A DNA stretch of 64,000 nucleotides from positions 44,144,001 to 44,208,000 of the forward strand of contig NW_025963780.1 of assembly GCF_023055435.1 (NCBI RefSeq), read 5' to 3'. The notes beneath the pieces are model-generated. The model saw only the letters and a program-made list of their open reading frames with translations. It did not search any database and was not told where the DNA came from. The DNA is from Haliotis rufescens (taxonomy: Eukaryota). A program made the translations under genes and the position numbers. This document shows positions 19,324 through 56,275 of the stretch, piece by piece (position 1 is the first letter of the stretch; every line of letters starts with the position of its first letter).

Positions 19324-19745
19324 NNNNNNNNNNNNNNNNNNNNNNNNNNNNNNNNNNNNNNNNNNNNNNNNNNNNNNNNNNNNNNNNNNNNNNNNNNNNN
19401 NNNNNNNNNNNNNNNNNNNNNNNNNNNNNNNNNNNNNNNNNNNNNNNNNNNNNNNNNNNNNNNNNNNNNNNNNNNNNNNNNNNNNNNNNNNNNNNNNNNN
19501 NNNNNNNNNNNNNNNNNNNNNNNNNNNNNNNNNNNNNNNNNNNNNNNNNNNNNNNNNNNNNNNNNNNNNNNNNNNNNNNNNNNNNNNNNNNNNNNNNNNN
19601 NNNNNNNNNNNNNNNNNNNNNNNNNNNNNNNNNNNNNNNNNNNNNNNNNNNNNNNNNNNNNNNNNNNNNNNNNNNNNNNNNNNNNNNNNNNNNNNNNNNN
19701 NNNNNNNNNNNNNNNNNNNNNNNNNNNNNNNNNNNNNNNNNNNNN
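19324..19745. other. Assembly gap (N run)
   Basis: Ns. Confidence 1.
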
Positions 19746-22041: not shown

Positions 22042-22645
22042 CCCAGGAAAGGTGGCTTCCATCCATCTGATTCCTTGTGGGTAGCATCAGATACATACTT
22101 ACCTAAAAGGCACACGGGTATATGTATACGTCAGTGAACATTTTTGTTTTATGTAGACACAAGTTTTTGCTTCATGTTTTGTGATATGGTGTCATGACTG
22201 ATTTTCAGTGGTCCATTCATATAAATTTCACAGATGTTTTGCCCTTTACTCCAAATGAAATGTGTTTTTTACATAGTTTTGTATATTTGTAACCCTTTGA
22301 CTCATTTGCCTTTTTTCCAAGTGTTCATGTCTAATCTAGAACCGTGTCATATAATACTATGTTTTGAGATCCCGATATACGTTTTAAAACTCGTATTAGA
22401 AATAATTCCGGCTGCTTTTGAAAAAACTTAAATAGATGAGAGTATAAGTATTATACCCAATATACTTGTGTTTTCTACAGAACAGAGACAGTGCATCATG
22501 GAACTGTATAAAAAAAATAAAGAGGTGTCACTCTCTATGTTTGTGGGTGTTTATTTACTGTGTTAAACTGTCAAAATACCCTCTCCTATAGACCCTGATA
22601 TCGAACATCTGAATGGGTGTTTCTCCAGACCTAGACCACACCAAC

Positions 22646-22700
22646 ATGTGGAGGAAGTGGCGAGGATCCCTCTTTCTGCTGACATGGATTACGCTTCAAG
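22646..22700 (+). CDS. Paralog B, signal-peptide exon (MWRKWRGSLFLLTWITLQ)
   Basis: ATG 22646, G|gtatct donor, 55 nt. Confidence 0.7.
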
Positions 22701-23904: not shown

Positions 23905-24300
23905 TTCTATGTCCAGCTGTCTCTGGCCTGAGACACAAGACTGCCTGTTACAACTTCACGCTGATAGTGGATCCTCCGTGTCCCACTACAGAGATGCTTC
24001 TTCCTACCATGTTTACACTCGGGGTGTCCTCTGATGTCACATGTCACAGTGAAATAAGTGGAACAAGCTTAAGACAGAAGGTAGTAGAGGAAATCAGACG
24101 TTGCTGTCAACAGAGTGAGAATGATGCAGTTACAGATTACTGCTTTCCTGCTATGAAGCACCAACTCAAGGATCACTACTACCTGGACTTTGTGAACACG
24201 TGCACGGCCGCCACAAAATGTATGCTGTCTACACCTCTTGGTAAAGTGCAGCACACTGATGGTAAAGACTATGTAACATTTACGTTTGAATGTGTGCACA
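23905..24300 (+). CDS. Paralog B, Cys-rich domain 1
   Basis: ttcacag| ... A|gtgagt; 396 nt open frame, all Cys conserved. Confidence 0.8.
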
Positions 24301-26198
24301 GTGAGTAGTGTCCATTATAAATAAATGTTTCAGCTATGTATATATGTCATTGACCATAGACAGGAAGTAAGGAAACGCTAAGCCCAACGCCGACTGTGTT
24401 CAGATATAACGTGACAGGACTTCTTATGAGCTTTACGTGCATGTTATGAAAGCCCATATAGCATGTGATGTAGTTAGTCATTGGAACCCATTGTACATGT
24501 AAGTAGTGTTTGGTCGTTTGTTGTTTAACGCCGCACTCAGCAATATGTCAGTTATATCATGGCGGCCTGTAAATAATCGAGTCTGGAACAGACCGTGCAG
24601 TGATCGAATTTGTGATCAACGATCCACGCCGTCGGAGTAGATGACACACAGACAAACAGGTCACCGAGCCAGACAAGCCGCCTCTCCCGACCAGCTCAAG
24701 TTGCTGGGGACCTAATACTGACAGAGGCAAATCCCCCTCCTTGTCATGCAACCAGGCGAAAGTTATGTATGCTATTTGTTGCCAATTCTTTCATTGCTGC
24801 AAGTTCATAAACCATATTAAAACCTAACTGGTTATACATGCTACACGTCACTTACTACAGGGTAGACATGTTTGTGGACCGTCATAACGCAGAATGTTAA
24901 TTTTCAACCTCAAACAACTACCACAAGTCTTTCAAAAAGTGGTGTATCCATTTCACGCAGATGGAGGCATGGTTATTTAAACTTTTAAGGCGCAATAAAT
25001 GTAACCATGTAAAATATAAATACAGCAAGTTCGCCCAACGGTTTCAGCAAAGAAACGTTGGCCCAACGTTCGATTAACGTCCGATTAGAAACTTGTATTA
25101 ATTTATGTTTAAACATAATTATTATAATATATTTTCGAATTCCACACATTTCCACATGTTAATGCTTTTAAACATTATATTTCATAATATCTTGAAACTC
25201 AGAGAAAGTCTAAGCAGATCTGTAAATATTTATTGACAACCCAATATTTCCTGACGAGTTCGTCGTACCTTGTTAACTGAACCCAAGTCATTGATATTTT
25301 GCCGCCCTATTATTATAGGGCCTTTATAATCCTTTCAATGATAAATAATCCAAGCTTCTGTCATCAGCAAACCCTGCAGTTATTAAAGGTGTATATATAT
25401 ATCTAAAAAGAAACATACCCAGATAGGCACCTTATTGTTCAGCGCACTTAACATATATCAGCGCGCTGTGTACATGTTTGTATATGAAGCACTATGGGCC
25501 ATGTGGCCTCAAATGCAAATATGATAAACTTGTCATAAAACTTGTCAAACTTGCCACTTTGGTATTAACTAACTCCCCGCTGAAGTTAATACGTGCTAAA
25601 TATTGACAAATAATTGAAGGCGACCATGTCATCAGTCTCTCTAAAAGAACAACAACGATCCTATCTCCACTGTTTGGTGATCGAAAAGTGAACTCGCGAG
25701 GTAACGGACATCAGTGAAGCTCCGGATTTTATTTGTTATCATTTACACGGAATGCTGAGAGTTTCAGCTAGCCTCTTTCTGAATTGTTCAGTTCCGATTG
25801 ATGTATATTTTATTTCTGACTGTCACAAGAAAAAGCGATTTTTGTTTGGTACTTCGTGTTTTATTAGGTAGTCGTGTGCTCGCTCGCTGTCCACTCTATA
25901 CTGCGTTGGTTGGTTGCTTTGTTGTTTTACGCCGCACTCAGCAATATTCCAGCTATATGACGGCAGTCTGTTTAAAGCTGCGTTAAACTCACTCACTCAG
26001 GCTTGAAAGGGATGAGGAAATTAGATTTATTATTCCATATATTACATTGTGTAAGAAACGTCATCCGTTCCTTATTATCTTTGATGTGTTTTTTTAAATC
26101 ATGCGGACAATGGAAATTACTTTGGATACCCATTTACAAGGAATATTAGTACACGACGGTCAGAAGAATAACTTTAATGACTTGGCCATCCTTTTCAG

Positions 26199-26530
26199 AG
26201 GACACGGTGCTGCACATCCAACGTGACTCTACACTCACAGGACAGGAGGTGTACCTGTACAACGACCAACATGACGGGATGGCCCATGCTAACTGTCTAG
26301 CATACTCTCATGAGTGTGACTCCCATGTCATAATACAACTTGCTGCAGCCCGAGTTGTGTCTGCCGCCTGCAGTGTGAACTTCACTGATGGGGATGTGTC
26401 AACCATGGTGGACTGTAAGAACCCACCTGCATCAAGAAACTGTTCCAGCGCAATGTTTGAGAGCAAGTCCAACTATGTTAACATGTCAATATTCATGACA
26501 GTCGATCCTGGACGTCAAGAAAAAGAGTAA
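26199..26530 (+). CDS. Paralog B, domain 2 ending in premature TAA
   Basis: ttttcag| acceptor; 17-nt deletion relative to A removes FLWLLA and creates GAG TAA just before the gtaag donor. Confidence 0.7.
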
Positions 26531-27128
26531 AGGTAAGAGGCAAATTATTGATAAACACCTTTACTGTTTATAAGATATGTGCTAAAAAGATTAAAATCTC
26601 ATTTCCAATAAGTGTACACTGCTGTAAAAATGTTTCTTCTGACACTTATGCGTCAAATCCATAAATAATGATCACATCAGTGGCAAAATACTTGTTGGGT
26701 GTCATTATGAGTGAGGAATATATTTGGAAAATGAAGCTTTGTCCCCGTAAAGCTTGTATTCTGAATCCTCGAACACCATATATCAATATATAGGACAATT
26801 TTATGGTTTGTTAAAAGCTGTCAGATTATTCAGTTTTCTCAATGTTGTATTAAAGTCAGATGGATGAAAACAGGTCATGAGTTGGACTTGTATCACGTCT
26901 TCTTCCACTATGAATCTATGCCTGGAGACCGAATATCATTGAACTCGATCGAATGCTTAAGTATTGACGAAAACCACCATGAGCCTTTTTATCACAGGAA
27001 ATAATACCCCTATCAATGACAGTTGGTGCGCACATACAAACGTACATCGTTACTGCACGAGGGCCTGAATATTATACATGATCTCAGGTATTGTCACAAT
27101 GTCATTAACTCAAAACCTTTACTTGTAG

Positions 27129-27486
27129 CGGATACAGGTGAGAATGTTACCGTCGTCTGTGAAGCCAACATACCTTCAGATGTGTCACTGAACTGCCCAA
27201 CGTCTGCATCAACTACTCCATCAACTACGTCAACGTTAACACCAACTACTTCAACGTCTGCATCAATAACTACATCAACTACTTCAACGTTAACACCAAC
27301 TGCTTCAAACGCCTGCATCAACTACTACGTCAACTACTTCAACGTCTGCATCAACTACGTCAACGTCTGCATCAACTACTACGACATCAACTACCTCAAC
27401 TACAAGTACTAATGTTGCTGCTACCACTGCTACTACAGAGACCTCCAATAATGCCTCCAGCAAACACACATTGTTAGCGGTAACAT
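27129..27486 (+). pseudogene. Paralog B mucin-stalk exon with +1 frameshift
   Basis: ttgtag| ADTGENVTVVCE...; extra A in tcaaacgcct (~27308) shifts the Thr repeat into the INYY frame; donor T|gtatgt. Confidence 0.6.
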
Positions 27487-28172
27487 GTATGTTCCCCTTA
27501 GAATTCGAGGATCCGAATTTCGTGACCCTGAACAAGCCAATAAATCTTGGACATAAAACATGTGTCCATAAGTACGAACCTACGAAGTTGATATGCTCGA
27601 TTAAATATTCCTGCCAGTTGTATTCAGAGTCAGAAACTGTTATTGTTTTTATCATTCATCTGATATTGCTTGACATTCAAGTAACATCACATGTGAATTG
27701 CGCTTGTTGTGAAAGGCGAGTGTTTATTTGTTTGAAATGTGTACGACTCATGAACACAGGTGAACACGTCAGGTGACTGGTTGTTTGCAAGCCACTGGTT
27801 CGGCAGTCTTACAATTCAAACAACAAAGCCAACAACTATACCAAACAACAACAATACCCCATTATCGTGTTGTTATATTGAGAGACCCGTGAAGATACGG
27901 GTTAGAATCGGTCTTCAGCGACCCATGCTTGCCGTCAAAGCGACTATGCTTGTCGTAAGAGGCTCGCTGACTTGGTTGATGCATGTCATCGTATCCCAAT
28001 TGCGTGGATCGATGCTCATGATGTCAATCACTGGGTTGTCTGGTCCAGACTCAGTTATTTTCAGACCGCCGCCATATAGCTAGAATATTGCTGAATGCGG
28101 CGTTAAACAACAAACAAACATACAAATATATTGCAGGATAATGATATGGTGTTTTTTTGTCTTCTTGTTCAG

Positions 28173-28260
28173 GTGAGCCATGCAACACACTACCCATAGC
28201 ACTAGGCGTATCCGTGGCTGTTCTGTTCGTTGGCTTTGTTTCAGGTTGGATAATGTCGAG
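28173..28260 (+). CDS. Paralog B transmembrane exon (CEPCNTLPIALGVSVAVLFVGFVSGWIMS), non-homologous to the A/C TM; downstream of the premature stop
   Basis: Polypyrimidine ttgttcag| acceptor, AG|gtaaat donor; 88 nt, phase 1-2. Confidence 0.65.
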
Positions 28261-28628
28261 GTAAATCCTATTATTACTTTTATTTGGTATCTCAGAAAAT
28301 GTCAGTGTCCAACACAAAATAAATATGCATTGAATTATGTTTTATTCTGTGTATGAGCAACAACTTACAAACGTTAATCTTATATATATATTACGATTAA
28401 TTTTGTTTCCCTACCTGACCAGCCTTGTGCTTACGATGTTGACTATACAGTAATCTACGGTTATAAAGAACACGCTTATAACTTTTTAGTCCCGACTACA
28501 TGCTGTAGTTATGCTGTATATATGCTTATAACGAATTGCGGTTATAACCAACTAAAACTAGCAGTCCCTTTGAGTTCGTAATAACCGTAGTTTACTGTAT
28601 AGCTATTGTGGAAACCTCTATTTCCCAG

Positions 28629-28779
28629 GTTTTTCTATCAACGCAAGACAAGGAAGAATGGTGCAGATGTTTACAACACGACCTCAGCTATGGAAGAAGA
28701 ACATACGTACACTACAGTCCAACCTACCAGCACGGCAACATATGCCAACACCTCCTATGAATCATCTTACAATCAATAA
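28629..28779 (+). CDS. Paralog B Tyr-rich cytoplasmic exon (RFFYQRKTRKNGADVYNTTSAMEEEHTYTTVQPTSTATYANTSYESSYNQ*); downstream of the premature stop
   Basis: tttcccag| acceptor in matching phase 2; basic juxtamembrane run; open to TAA overlapping AATAAA. Confidence 0.65.
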
Positions 28780-31700
28780 AAAATGGGCATAATATTAAAA
28801 ATAAATATTTCCTTTCCTTTTGGTGTGTATTTACATTTTCGAAGCACTAGGGTGTCGTTTAGTTGCTGATATTATTTTACAGTGTTGCAGAAGTAAATCA
28901 ATTTCATTGAGTTACTCAGTGACTAAGACTGCTTTCGTTTTGTCAATATCCCAATCAAAAGTGGACTTCACACTTGGTTCCCGTATTCATGTAAATAACT
29001 GCAGAAGGTTTTAATGCTTCTTCTAATTACGTTGTAATGACGTCAGTATTGATATCGTTACTTTTTAAAATTAAATTACATGATATAAATTCCCTGAAAC
29101 TTCATATAAAATCTATTTAGGACATGATTCTGGTTCTGTGCATAAACAGTCAAAATTGTTTGCAAACTCTGTACCAAGCTGTAGGACATTTGTTGTAGGA
29201 TATTTCTTATTGGCAAATACTTTGCTTGTATATATTTTTGTAGATATGACAAGATCTCGTTAATTCCTAATGGAAAGGAAAGGAATTCACAGAAAGTTTA
29301 TGACAGATGGAATGGTGCCGTCATTTTCAACAAAAACGAATGTTCTTCACCCCCCACAATTCTGATGTGTATCGTCGTTTATTGATTCATTCGATTAAAG
29401 TTGAAGACGAGATCAATGGCGCTGCATCTGACAGTGCCGTCCGTGAACAAACACACACCCACCCCATCCCCACCCACCCCAACAACCCCAACCCCAACCC
29501 CCACCCCCTCACTTCCCCAGCCCTTAGAAATATCTAAACGATGCACAAATAACTCTCACATGTCAAGTACTGGCCACAAAAACAAAGTATAGTAACATTC
29601 TACAGGTCTTCACAGCACTCCTTGTGTGCCGTAAAAGGCGACTATGCTTGTCGCAAGAGGCGACTAACGTTATCGGGTGGTCAAGCTCGCTGACTTGGTT
29701 GATGCATGTCATCGATCCCAGTTGCGTGGATCGATGCTCATGATATTAATCACAGGATTGTCTGGTCCAGACTCGATTATTTACAGAGTGCGGCGTTAAA
29801 CAACAAACCAACCAAACCAACAACAAGGTCAGTGCCGTTCAGATACCCTTGACATGCAACTCACGTTAATAACGGCTTTCGATCTTCCTGCTGCAATTAC
29901 GTGTCCTCACAAAAGTGTTATAAAATCGTCAGGAGTTTGATGTACACGTATAGTGTTTTATTAATTTACTTCTTTTTTGATATTATGGATATTACCGACA
30001 GATAATGATCTGGAAGAGCTACTGGCTGTAAAATATTCTTTCTCCATATCGGCTAAACGGCCCTGTTTGTGGATAGGTAATAGACTAATATACACGTATA
30101 AGACGAAATGAAATATGTCTTGGCATCATATGTTGTGTATTAGATGATGGTTATGCCCTGAATTGTCAGAATGTTAGATCACGAGGACTGAACGGTAGAG
30201 CGTTTCATGATACACTAGGGTTTTGGACACTTGCTGGTAACACCAAACACTGATATGAGAAATTAGGATATGCAAATACAAATGTACATAAGTATGGAAG
30301 GTAGTGGAGGAAACAAATCGAATTAGTTGTTAATCGGGTCTGATTGTTCTCAACATGTTACGATATTGCATAGACAATACGAATTTGCATCATTGATTCG
30401 AGTTATTGTAAACTGAAGAATACCAAATATTTCCATATAATGCGTATACTTCCACATACCCACCAAATTCAAATATACTTCCTGTGTGAAGCATTATACA
30501 GTTGAAAACTTACCGCCAAGTATTGCTAATAAATAACGTTAACTCAATAATCAGACTCGGGTGCCTGCCGAAACACATATTTGGCGACATAAAGTTGAAA
30601 ACGTTTGTGTTGTAGTGTATGTCATGTCAGCTCGATGTTGGAAGGGATGCATGTCTTACACATTTACCAACCTGGTGAAACCCACGACTACGGTTATGAT
30701 GCTGACAAACTCACAAACCAAGGAACATAATCTGTACAAAACTGGGATTCGAACCAACGATCATAGGTTCCTGACGCAATCCTGCAAATCAAGTGACGGC
30801 GACTTAGACGACTCGGTCATCCTTGTTCGAGGTCCGTAAACAAGTAAATACATCTTGATGAAATAGAAGTTTATTAGATTTCAAATTTAAACTTACGTAA
30901 CTTAAAGTTTGTATAAATACGCCTCATGAACTAGTCGCTGAGCCTGACCACGCGATCCACTTAGTCACCTTTCATTCTCAAACCGAACCCCACGGGTTAA
31001 GTATTCATAAAAAAGGCACTTTCCTTCTCACCCCAATTTTTAGTCCTATATTATCACATTAACACAACCATTACACAATGCAATTGGTGCCACATTAATT
31101 TTGTATATGTGAAATAATGATCTAATTCCGCACGTGTATTAAGCATGATTGCTCATGAAATGCAAAATCCATATCATGACTATACCGCCATTAAAGTTGC
31201 TGTACAATATTATACTCACTTGTGAAGAGATAACACTAGAAGGAGAATTTCACCAAGTGCTTCTCATTGTAGAGGAGTTCCGATCAAATACCGCTACAGA
31301 TGTCCACCATTCATTCAGCACATGTTTGAACAAATGACATGTATTCAAATGACACGAAACACGGAAAAAATCACTGTCCACATAAAAGGCATTTATACAC
31401 GCCTGATGGTGTAACATTACTTGAATGTACTTCTGTAATGTTAAATCTCTGGAGTATAAAAACGCTTTTCAATTGTGCTGTTGAAGATTGGAAGTCTTGA
31501 ATGTAATAGTATCTACCTTATTATGTACATGTATTAGTATCAGTGTTTATATTAAACTTACTTTAGTATCTGGCACACCTTGAACTGAGGCAACTGGGCC
31601 AACAGGGACCCACCACACGATAGCCGTTAACTATTACACGTGACAAAGTTTAAAGCGGCTGATAAGATAACAGCTACATGTGCAACACTGCGTCTGCGCT

Positions 31701-38366: not shown

Positions 38367-38579
38367 NNNNNNNNNNNNNNNNNNNNNNNNNNNNNNNNNN
38401 NNNNNNNNNNNNNNNNNNNNNNNNNNNNNNNNNNNNNNNNNNNNNNNNNNNNNNNNNNNNNNNNNNNNNNNNNNNNNNNNNNNNNNNNNNNNNNNNNNNN
38501 NNNNNNNNNNNNNNNNNNNNNNNNNNNNNNNNNNNNNNNNNNNNNNNNNNNNNNNNNNNNNNNNNNNNNNNNNNNNNNN
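38367..38579. other. Assembly gap (N run)
   Basis: Ns. Confidence 1.
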
Positions 38580-42285: not shown

Positions 42286-42373
42286 AGGTGGTTATAATCG
42301 GCTGCAGTGTGGGAGGAGTCATCATGATAGCAATCATTGTGACAATCACGGTCTGCGTCCGACGAAAGAAAAG
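42286..42373 (+). CDS. Paralog C, transmembrane exon (EVVIIGCSVGGVIMIAIIVTITVCVRRKK)
   Basis: gttaacag| ... AG|gtaaaa; 88 nt. Confidence 0.8.
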
Positions 42374-53236: not shown

Positions 53237-53377
53237 CAGTTGATGGTGTTACCGCTACCGGTGTCGGTTCCGAAGCAGTTGATTTCGTAGTAGTTGATGT
53301 AGATGCTGGGCAGTTCAGTGACACATCTGCAGGAATGGTGGCTCCACAGACGACGGTAACATTCTCACCTGTATCCG
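53237..53377 (-). CDS. Paralog D, short stalk exon (SDTGENVTVVCGATIPADVSLNCPASTSTTTKSTASEPTPVAVTPST)
   Basis: atttgtag| ... ACT G|gtaagc; 141 nt; read-through would meet TAA 10 codons later. Confidence 0.7.
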
Positions 53378-54176
53378 CTACAAATAAATGATTATTGAAT
53401 AAATACTACACATACTTATACATTTGTACATCAATTAGAGCAAACATTTAGACAGACAATGTTTACACTTATACACGCGTCTGTAGTATTGATAATATCT
53501 CTACCAGCTTATGTATTTGTATAAAAATGTTGTGGGTGCTCCCGAGGACCATTGTCGAATTACGTTACCTACCACGGACATGATAGGAATCAGTAGCTAG
53601 TGTGTGATCCCTAGAGCACGACACTGCCACACGAGAGATATTACAACCAATATTCTTGAGACGTCATCGCGTCAGGGATTCTTGGACACGTTAAACATAT
53701 ACTACTGTTGCGACACCATCGTGCAGTAATTTTATTGACGATATGACAAATTGAAAAATGCATACCGAGGTAGTATCACCGGACAATTCACGATTGCACA
53801 ATGTATTCACTAATTACCTACATGATTTCAGAGAGAGGTTTGACTGTAGCAATGGTGTATACATCCATGTTCATTATACAATATTTTTCAATTTCAACTC
53901 ATGCTTAGGCGTTTTGGTTTGAGTGAAATTTTCACGAACGTTTACCCCTTGATATATGAACAAAGATCACAAACAACATATCTTGAAAGTAATTATACTT
54001 ATCCCTCCCTAATGCCTAGTTGAATACACATGATATCAAAATAATTAGTTATCCTAGCACGACTTCAGGGCAGACATCAGACGCCAATTGCCATCATGGA
54101 ACAATTTCCACACGAAATTCGTTACATTTCAAGGTTGACCAATACATCAGGGGAAATATAATTATTAATCACTTAC

Positions 54177-54527
54177 ATTTCGCTCGCATCCACAGAAATT
54201 CTTTTTCTTGACGTCCAGGATCGACTGTCATGAATATTGACATGTTAACATAGTTGGACTTGCTCTCAAACATTGCGCTGGAACAGTTTCTTGATGCAGG
54301 TGGGTTCTTACATTCCACCTTGGTTGACACATCCCCATCAGTGAAGTTAACACTGCAGGCGGGAGACACAACTCTGGTTGCAGCAAGTTGTATTATGACA
54401 TGGGAGTCACACTCATGAGAGTATGCTAGACAGTTAGCATGGGCCTCCCCGTCATGTTGGTCGTTGTACAGGTACACCTCCTGTCCTGTGTGTGTAGAAT
54501 CATGTTGGATGTGCAGAACCGTGTCCT
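54177..54527 (-). CDS. Paralog D, domain 2
   Basis: ttttcag| ... T|gtaagt; 351 nt. Confidence 0.85.
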
Positions 54528-54629
54528 CTGAAAAGAATGGCCAAGTCATTAAAGATCAAATCTTGTGCACGTACGGGGCCATTTAACAGTAATTCGGTAA
54601 AGGGATATATCACATCACAATATTCCTCG

Positions 54630-55318
54630 TATTGACCGTCAGAAGGAAATGTTCCTGGTATTGACCGTCAGAAGGAAATGTTCCTGGTATTGGCCGTCAG
54701 AAAGAAATGTTCCTGGTATTGACCGTCAGAGGGAAATGTTCCTGGTATTGACCGTCAGAAGGAAATGTTCCTGGTATTGACCTTCAGAGGGAAATGTTTC
54801 TGGTATTGACCGTCAGAGGGAAATGTTTCTGGTATTGACCGTCAGAGGGAAATGTTTCTGGTATTGACCGTCAGAGGGAAATGTTTCTGGTATTGACCGT
54901 CAGAGGGAAATGTTTCTGGTATTGACCGTCAGAGGGAAATGTTCCTGGTATTGACCTTCAGAGGGAAATGTTTCTGGTATTGACCGTCAGAGGGAAATGT
55001 TTCTGGTATTGACCGTCAGAGGGAAATGTTTCTGGTATTGACCGTCAGAGGGAAATGTTTCTGGTATTGACCGTCAGAGGGAAATGTTTCTGGTATTGAC
55101 CGTCAGAGGGAAATGTTTCTGGTATTGACCGTCAGAGGGAAATGTTTCTGGTATTGACCGTCAGAAGGAAATGTTTCTGGTATTGACCGTCAGAGGGAAA
55201 TGTTCCTGGTATTGACCGTCAGGAGGAAATTTCCTGGTATTGACCGTCAGAGGGAAATGTTCCTGGTATTGACCGTCAGAGGGAAATGTTCCTGGTATTT
55301 ACAGTCAGAGGGAAATGA
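54630..55318. repeat. 29-bp minisatellite (TATTGACCGTCAGAGGGAAATGTTTCTGG), ~23 copies, in an intron of D
   Basis: Direct tandem repetition with no spacers. Confidence 0.95.
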
Positions 55319-55417
55319 ACACAGTCGATTAAATATGAGTGTTGACTTATGCGTTTCCTTTTTGGAAAGTATATGTATAGGTAGCTTAAACATAAACTCA
55401 TAATGGACACTACTCAC

Positions 55418-55813
55418 TGTGCACACATTCAAACGTGAATGTTACGTAGTCTTCACCAGCAGTATCCATTACCCGACCTCCAGGTGAAGATAGCTGACAT
55501 CTTGTAGCAGCCGTGCACGTGTTCACAAAGTCCAGGTAGTAGTGATCCGGGAGTTGGTTCTTCATGGCAGGGAGGCAGTAATCTGTCACTGTATCATTCT
55601 CACGCTGTTGACAGCAACGTCTGATTTCGTCTACTCCCTTCTGTCCTAAGCTTGTTCCAGTTATTTCACTGTGACATGTGACGTCAGAGGACACCCCGAG
55701 TGTAAACATGGTAGGAAGAAGCATCTCTGTAGCGGCACACGGAGGATCGACCATCAACAGGAAGTTGTAACAGGCAGTCTTGTGTCTCAGACCAGAGACA
55801 GCTGTACATAAAA
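55418..55813 (-). CDS. Paralog D, Cys-rich domain 1
   Basis: ttcacag| ... A|gtgagt; 396 nt; within ORF 55410-55853. Confidence 0.85.
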
Positions 55814-56275
55814 CTGTGAATGCAAATTGACTGAGACTAAAGACTTGTTTCAATTGTATTTAAGGTAGTGGATCGTTACCAACAATAAGAGATCTGGACA
55901 CCATATACCTTGTCAACTCACTAAATATATGTCGCAGGTTAAATTTGTTGCTAAAAGGTGAATGCAATATTGATTGAGACTAAAGAATTGCTTAAATGCT
56001 ATTTATGGGGTAATGGATCGTTACCTTAAAATAAGATCTCTAGATAGCCTAATACCGTTTTGCACATTCATACCTCATCAAGTCTTACGAAGCAGAACTT
56101 GCACACACACTGACAACAAGATTTACAAAGTCATACATGTTCAGTTAGAAGAATGTTATATTTATCCCAATTAATGGTAACGCAAACTCATAAGACTTTG
56201 ATTATTTTCGTTGCAATTTCCCTACCATGTACTGTGGCATAATTCATTCATAGAAATGTTACTTGCTGACTGTAA

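Follow-up and report, generated by a model that had tools for sequence, protein, structure and literature searches.

Homogenised binding domains in paired receptors are regarded as characteristic of the leukocyte receptor clusters of vertebrates, on which pathogens or ligands exert pressure. Multi-YxN docking tails are, in turn, those of LAT, DAP10 (YxNM) and CD28 (YMNM). In pairs of the CEACAM1/CEACAM3 type, the likeness of the binding exons has been ascribed to gene conversion (PMC2832619), as has the homogenisation of Siglec-11 and Siglec-16 (PMC5701461, PMC4042635), and the term merohomogenisation has been used for such a pattern in the KLR, Ly49 and PIR paired receptors (PMC3210942).

The locus described here lies in a window of 64,000 nucleotides (the whole stretch of DNA analysed) from the red abalone Haliotis rufescens, at 44144001-44208000 on chromosome C2, where an initial annotation had drawn attention to two exons of paralog B encoding a transmembrane (TM) segment and a cytoplasmic tail unlike those of paralogs A and C. 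Our main reading, which we hold at a probability of roughly three in four, is that these are the TM and tail exons of the short-tail (S) genes in a Haliotis array with paired-receptor architecture, where S genes alternate with long-tail (L) genes, and that the copy in paralog B is most likely an untranslated relic. The family, restricted to Haliotis, would consist of type-I membrane glycoproteins in which a signal peptide precedes two Cys-rich domains and a mucin-like stalk leads on to the TM segment and tail. S and L genes would keep nearly the same ectodomain exons by gene conversion, with the TM segment and the tail staying type-specific, and the inverted array member, paralog D, would be secreted.

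Like CEACAM1 and CEACAM3 (PMC2832619, PMC5112662), the abalone genes are linked paralogs with near-identical binding exons, apparently kept so by conversion; the TM and cytoplasmic exons of the partners are unrelated; a long tail with tyrosine motifs is paired with a short tail carrying non-canonical tyrosine motifs of its own, instead of with an adaptor-binding TM segment; and secreted and truncated relatives lie in the same cluster. Unlike in the CEACAMs, the abalone ectodomain is not Ig-like, has no Pfam match and is followed by a mucin stalk; neither ITIM, ITSM nor ITAM occurs in the tails, and the animal is a gastropod. The confinement of homogenisation after speciation to the ligand-binding part, with signalling ends that remain type-specific across species, is shared with KLRC, KLRB, Ly49 and PIR (PMC3210942) and with Siglec-11/16 and Siglec-5/14 (PMC5701461, PMC4042635). 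Contrary to the activating partners of the KLR and Siglec pairs, which usually have a charged TM segment and a borrowed ITAM adaptor, the abalone S type has an uncharged TM segment, and, also unlike in those pairs, the array is made up of six tandem copies of the S-L unit as a whole. With LAT, DAP10 and CD28, the S type has in common a short cytoplasmic sequence with a conserved Tyr-x-Asn, whose partner in the abalone is putative, and it differs from them in having no sequence homology in its tail.

The S-type exons and the alternating array

Paralog B (LOC124120904, the sixth S gene or S6) has six coding exons, all on the forward strand, for the signal peptide, the two domains (dom1 and dom2), the stalk, the TM segment and the tail. 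Exon 1 (22613-22700) holds the start codon and the signal peptide MGVSPDLDHTNMWRKWRGSLFLLTWITLQ, ends at a phase 1 donor, G/GTATCT, and agrees in translation with the N-terminus of the RefSeq protein P0045. The dom1 exon (23905-24300) translates into an open, Cys-rich stretch of about 130 aa and is 84-89% identical in DNA to those of A, C and D; it is followed by the Cys-rich dom2 exon (26199-26532), which carries a private 17-nt deletion, and by the Ser/Thr-rich stalk exon (27129-27486; 358 nt, which leaves a remainder of one on division by three), with the donor ACAT/GTATGT.

The coordinates, translations, clean splice sites and matching phases initially proposed for the last two exons hold. 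The S-type TM exon (28173-28260) is 88 nt long, enters in phase 1 and leaves in phase 2, and lies between AG and GT sites (ttgttcAG on the 5' side, GTaaat on the 3' side). A Cys codon, T/GT, is split between 27486, where the stalk exon ends, and the first two bases of the TM exon; the translation then reads EPCNTLPIALGVSVAVLFVGFVSGWIMS, and the TM exon ends with AG, in phase 2. The tail exon (28629-28779), preceded by tttcccAG, comprises 49 codons plus a stop and is translated as (R)FFYQRKTRKNGADVYNTTSAMEEEHTYTTVQPTSTATYANTSYESSYNQ up to that stop codon, which is overlapped by an AATAAA at 28775.

The TM exon of paralog C, an L-type gene, at 42286-42373 is likewise 88 nt long and has the same phases as that of B, as had been pointed out. 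This equal length raised the idea of leftover homology between the two TM types, which was rejected: in register, the exons of B and C share 28 of 88 bases, as against 21.9 +/- 4.0 in shuffled sequences, and 413 of 5000 shuffles reached an identity as high, which is not significant. Together with the finding that blastn within the window returned no match between S and L types for either the TM exon or the tail, this bears out the observation that the ends of A and C are unlike those of B, and supports a non-homologous TM and tail module on the same ectodomain.

What did not stand is the view of this swap as a peculiarity of paralog B, since it belongs to a six-member S subfamily conserved across the genus. 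When each exon was searched separately by tblastn over 258 kb, that is, the window with 154 kb upstream and 40 kb downstream added, six S and six L genes were found in strict alternation, each S followed by one L, with a period of about 30 kb. The six S-L pairs span about 180 kb, the last of them being followed by the inverted gene D. In this order B is S6, whereas A and C are L5 and L6, respectively; paralog A corresponds to the RefSeq protein P0003 (XP_048247190.1, H. rufescens). The genome-wide search suggested at the outset, run here on the whole genome both as DNA and in six frames, found both exons in exactly five further copies, all of them upstream on the same chromosome (C2), so that the tail has only six copies genome-wide. 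None of the six S genes has lost the AG/GT sites or the open frame of either exon.

Homologues of these ends in related species, also called for by the initial annotation, are present in RefSeq for four species of Haliotis. When proteins of 253-806 aa were scored against residues 383-461 of P0027 (the TM segment and tail of S1), six were found, all of them members of this family: two from H. rufescens, two from H. cracherodii, one from H. rubra and one from H. asinina. Neither among the proteins of this length range nor in the six-frame search of the whole genome was there a donor gene for the TM segment and tail outside the family. In RefSeq, the array genes are named "uncharacterized protein" or bear misnomers derived from the mucin stalk, and the literature search on these abalone genes found no paper.

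In S4 and S5 (about -29948 and -1569 in window coordinates), a common deletion has made the TM exon 15 nt shorter (73 nt vs 88) without a change of frame, so that it lacks EPCNT, at the outer membrane face. Two runs of N, either assembly gaps or masked sequence, lie in the window, at 19324-19745 and 38367-38579; the second belongs to paralog C and falls in its long stalk region.

Homogenised ectodomains and type-specific ends

The way in which B aligns with the other members depends on their type. With the other S genes, it can be aligned along the whole gene, introns included, at 80-88% identity; with the L genes and D, the alignment is confined to the ectodomain exons with short flanks, at 85-96%, and to the upstream region, at 68-72%. 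The introns of S and L genes gave no alignment, and the S-type donor, at 27486, marks the point where the homology between both types stops. At synonymous sites, the ectodomain exons of S and L genes diverge (dS 0.172 for dom1 and 0.101 for dom2) to the same extent as those of genes of one type (0.162 and 0.088 within S, 0.133 and 0.107 within L).

In a tree of the dom2 exon from the four species, built on about 112 columns, the genes of both types from H. asinina and H. rubra formed a single clade (support 98/90), set against every S or L gene from H. rufescens and H. cracherodii. Forcing the S type to be monophyletic was rejected (dlnL 47, p-AU 0.0099). Since this tree groups the genes by species lineage and not by gene type, the ectodomain exons appear from it to have been homogenised between S and L since these lineages split. 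Both kinds of end, S and L, occur in every one of the four species (H. rufescens, H. cracherodii, H. rubra and H. asinina); as dom2 sorts there by lineage and the TM segment and tail by type, the ectodomain and the signalling end have had different histories. Three of the features by which paired receptors are recognised are found together at this locus: linked genes with similar ectodomains, whose exon DNA is 85-96% identical between types; TM and cytoplasmic ends that differ between types, each conserved across four species; and a ligand-binding part homogenised after speciation, as indicated by the tree, the dS values and the introns. Of the two origins initially considered, exon shuffling or gene conversion of the ectodomain, it is conversion that these same three lines of evidence directly support.

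S2 (about -91013 to -89488) is a hybrid whose stalk lacks the S-type GTATGT donor and continues into L-type stalk sequence, because of which its donor lies a few codons further on (SSAG/GTGAGC, phase 1). Such a hybrid resembles what a conversion tract extending over the S/L breakpoint would leave behind. The predicted RefSeq protein P0029 corresponds to S2 and, by means of this alternative stalk donor, has its ectodomain and stalk joined to an S-type TM segment and tail.

Two repeats accompany the S-type ends. A high-copy SINE-like repeat adjoins the TM exon on its upstream side (27879-28128, reverse strand) and is common to all six S genes, so that its insertion is older than the amplification of the array. 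At least 12 copies or fragments of this element lie in the window, for example at 24507-24680, 25905-25971, 27879-28128 and 29604-29787, and its summed contig depth reached 10^5-10^6 in all four runs. SINE-mediated recombination was considered as the origin of the swap and rejected, as the family is a high-copy one and the element resembles its counterparts in A, C and D no more closely than it does random copies. The intron between the TM and tail exons holds a dispersed repeat (28443-28606, no strand assigned), seen in B only within the array and in dozens of copies genome-wide.

State and use of paralog B

Even though the initial annotation took the module of B to be in use, the lesions upstream of it and the short RefSeq model of the gene argue against this in the reference haplotype. 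A loss of 17 nt after 26527, in the dom2 exon, creates an in-frame TAA at 26528-26530. These 17 nt are kept in all eleven other copies (in L3 without one base of the stretch), which end this exon in ...gaaaaaga[ga]tttct[gt]tgg...gaaag/gtaag, whereas B reads gaaaaagagtaaag/gtaag. The predicted RefSeq model of B, P0045, is accordingly a protein of 271 aa with the C-terminal ...GRQEKE, at the deletion. The second lesion is an extra A at 27307, a +1 frameshift in the stalk exon and the reason why this exon measures 358 nt, which is not a multiple of three; the stalk exons of S1, S3, S4 and S5 (312, 333, 321 and 276 nt) are all open. The base at 27307 is absent from every contig covering it in two other runs of the species, X15 and X18, which stem from different studies and in which the B-specific neighbouring bases are kept, so that the frameshift is either private to the reference or an assembly slip.

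L3 (about -51270) also has a lesion of its own, a 1-nt deletion at the end of the dom2 exon (gaattttttgg vs gaatttctttgg). As this deletion shifts the frame, L3 is possibly a second pseudogene, or else the deletion is possibly an assembly slip.

The tail exon of B has 11 private nucleotide differences, whereas S1 to S5 have at most two each, and B alone has lost the second YxN motif of the tail. In the neighbouring intron, B has only 3 private differences, with 0-37 in the other five S copies (and 0-2 in their exons); homogenisation among the other five tails is a possible source of this excess of exon over intron in B. On account of the upstream lesions, the 271-aa P0045, the private changes in the tail and the loss of the second YxN, the TM and tail exons of B are probably untranslated in the reference haplotype. 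Translation would there stop after domain 2, and the product would be either a secreted two-domain protein or nothing.

Use of the S-type ends by other members of the array is seen in the RefSeq models. The predicted protein P0027 (S1, 461 aa) reads ...DTPVAVT-C-EPCNTLPITLG...GWIMS-R-CFCQRQTRKNG..., with the same junctions between stalk, TM segment and tail as had been proposed for B. Among the runs recorded as RNA, none holds the stretch. Two small RNA-like runs of the same species (X1 and X3) cover the ectodomain exons at depths of 270-614, with 0-5 on the introns, and one 87-nt contig of X1, with a depth of 137, covers 28177-28262, that is, the TM exon. An S-type TM exon is transcribed, as this RNA-like contig indicates. 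The contig has 3 mismatches to B, from which S1 and S3 also differ by three letters, and it may derive from S1 or S3.

A spliced contig joining dom2 to the stalk contains 23 letters found only in paralog D. Because it comes from D and the paralogs cross-map, the ectodomain depth on B is not specific to B. Paralog D (53277-55842) has contigs in both X1 and X3, with depths of 355 and 191, spliced from domain 2 to stalk; their D-specific letters (54177-54199 in the window, reverse strand) indicate that D is transcribed and that its reads cross-map onto B. In RefSeq, D is the predicted protein P0035, a secreted form of 323 aa.

Continued use of the TM and tail exons of B, through haplotypes free of the lesions or through an isoform that skips dom2, is an alternative that we regard as unlikely. 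The absence of the 27307 insertion in runs X15 and X18 speaks for it, as do the intact reading frames and splice sites of both exons; a skip of dom2 would preserve the phase, the dom1 and stalk exons both being in phase 1, and the S-type model P0005 of H. asinina does without one whole ectodomain exon. B may be intact in some haplotypes. Continued use is opposed, however, by a RefSeq model that ends at the deletion after 271 aa, by the 11 private changes of the tail and the second YxN lost in B alone, and by the reads, in which neither B-specific junction (27486 to 28173 or 28260 to 28629) was seen among the 15 of 219 joints listed. An untranslated relic remains our preferred reading for the reference copy of B.

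Tail motifs, putative signalling and family range

Ten S-type tails from the four species were compared, four of them as single-exon translations with the split-codon Arg added in front. Their invariant positions are R...QR..R.NGADVY.TTS.M.EEHTY.T..P.S..TYANTSYE...N, and the conserved features comprise DVY, the acidic EEHTYxT, TYAN (a YxN motif) and SYE. TYAN is invariant in all ten tails, and a second YxN, Y[HY]N, is present in nine, B being the only one without it. The SH2 domain of Grb2 prefers Tyr-x-Asn, and a tyrosine with acidic residues before it is favoured by Src-family kinases. We infer that the S tail is a phosphotyrosine docking site for Grb2-type adaptors, acting through YxN. According to the mechanism that we propose, both types would bind the same ligand, the S tail would then be phosphorylated on its invariant tyrosines (DVY, EEHTYxT, TYAN and SYEY[HY]N), and the phosphorylated tail would recruit Grb2-type SH2 adaptors through YxN, with an output different from that of the L tail, which has an NPxY and three Y[AT][KQ]V motifs. 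That the two tails signal in opposite, or merely in different, ways is something that we can only infer.

The S type would play another role if it were an internalising or decoy receptor, with a short tail that mainly served endocytosis by means of YxxPhi (YSTV/YTTV) and did not primarily set off a kinase cascade, as CEACAM3 is for CEACAM1. Nine of the ten tails have the YxxV, and a long-tail partner with a shared ectodomain and homogenisation fits the CEACAM decoy model; in H. asinina, however, YxxV is replaced by YSTA, whereas the tyrosine of YxN is invariant, and we consider this role quite unlikely.

Still less probable is the "ITAM-like, activating-type" tail of the initial annotation, which, doubly phosphorylated, would dock a tandem-SH2 kinase such as Syk or Shark. 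Following the definitions quoted in PMC2832619, the tails were searched with regular expressions for ITAM, (D/E)xxYxx(L/I)-x6-8-Yxx(L/I), also in a loosened version ([LIVM], x6-12), for ITIM, (I/L/V/S)xYxx(L/V), for ITSM, TxYxx(V/I), and for hemITAM, a tri-acidic run followed by xYxxL. None of the ten tails matched ITAM, strict or loosened, as they read Yxx[V/A]-x7-YxxT, and none matched ITIM, ITSM or hemITAM, the residue at position -2 of HTYxTV being His. The YTTV-x7-YANT spacing had been read correctly, and there are acidic residues before the first tyrosine and two tyrosines 11 residues apart in all ten tails; non-canonical ITAM-like motifs are, moreover, accepted in CEACAM3-type receptors (PMC2832619). 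Of the imperfect match at the +3 positions, described as V and T, the Thr of the second half is indeed invariant, whereas the Val of the first half gives way to Ala in H. asinina (YSTA), and both facts count against an ITAM. The S-type TM segment, LPI[AT]LGVSVAVL[IF]VGFV[SL]GWI[MI]S, contains no K, R, D or E and lacks the charged residue for adaptors of the DAP12 or FcR-gamma type, which leaves this reading very unlikely. The docking tail described above is the one that we retain.

That both exons are chance open frames in non-coding DNA, which only their small size would suggest, is already refuted by the conservation of the AG/GT sites and reading frames in all six copies, orthologues in four species, their use in RefSeq models and a dN/dS of 0.34 in the tail exon within H. 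rufescens (dN 0.047, dS 0.139, the intron beside it differing by 0.146 among the S copies).

Whether the architecture amounts to true paired receptors in the abalone, with a non-Ig, lineage-specific ectodomain, six S-L pairs, conversion limited to exons, and different, possibly opposing, tail signals, is a more tentative matter, to which we would give somewhat less than even chances. If so, the paired-receptor solution with merohomogenisation would have arisen independently outside vertebrates: a mollusc array with the same genetic signature, built on another fold and other tail motifs, would be an independent case in which this architecture could be tested as a general answer to fast-evolving ligands. 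For abalone biology, where disease weighs heavily on culture, the array is a candidate recognition locus. It offers natural variants for comparison, namely intact genes of both types, B with its truncation, A without a tail and D as a secreted form.

As for the fold of the ectodomain, Pfam gave no domain for any of the exons of B at E<=1, nor for 17 family members at E<=10, and a sequence search of the PDB with the family profile had no match. The AlphaFold2 model of P0045, made from a 17-row alignment, reached a pLDDT of 45.6, too poor for a fold search, which was omitted for this reason. A language-model look-up in the ESM Atlas returned a SUEL-type lectin for the ectodomain with a score of 0.81, which we take as a weak lead; the SUEL or rhamnose-binding lectin family (PF02140) was not among the Pfam matches of the exons (E<=1) or of the 17 members (E<=10). 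Full-length comparisons were made on RefSeq proteins rather than on joined exons of B. A full phmmer search with the dom2 exon found RefSeq proteins of Haliotis only, and a word search with this exon alone, to which the length window was applied, a single 103-aa fragment. Distant relatives with 28-33% identity in domain 2 are P0008 and P0012, on another chromosome of H. rufescens, and P0009 of H. asinina. They follow the same plan as the array genes, two domains plus mucin repeats, and their RefSeq names, "serine-rich adhesin for platelets-like" and "hepatitis A virus cellular receptor 1-like", are misnomers due to the mucin stalks. These relatives indicate that the family is wider within abalone than this array.
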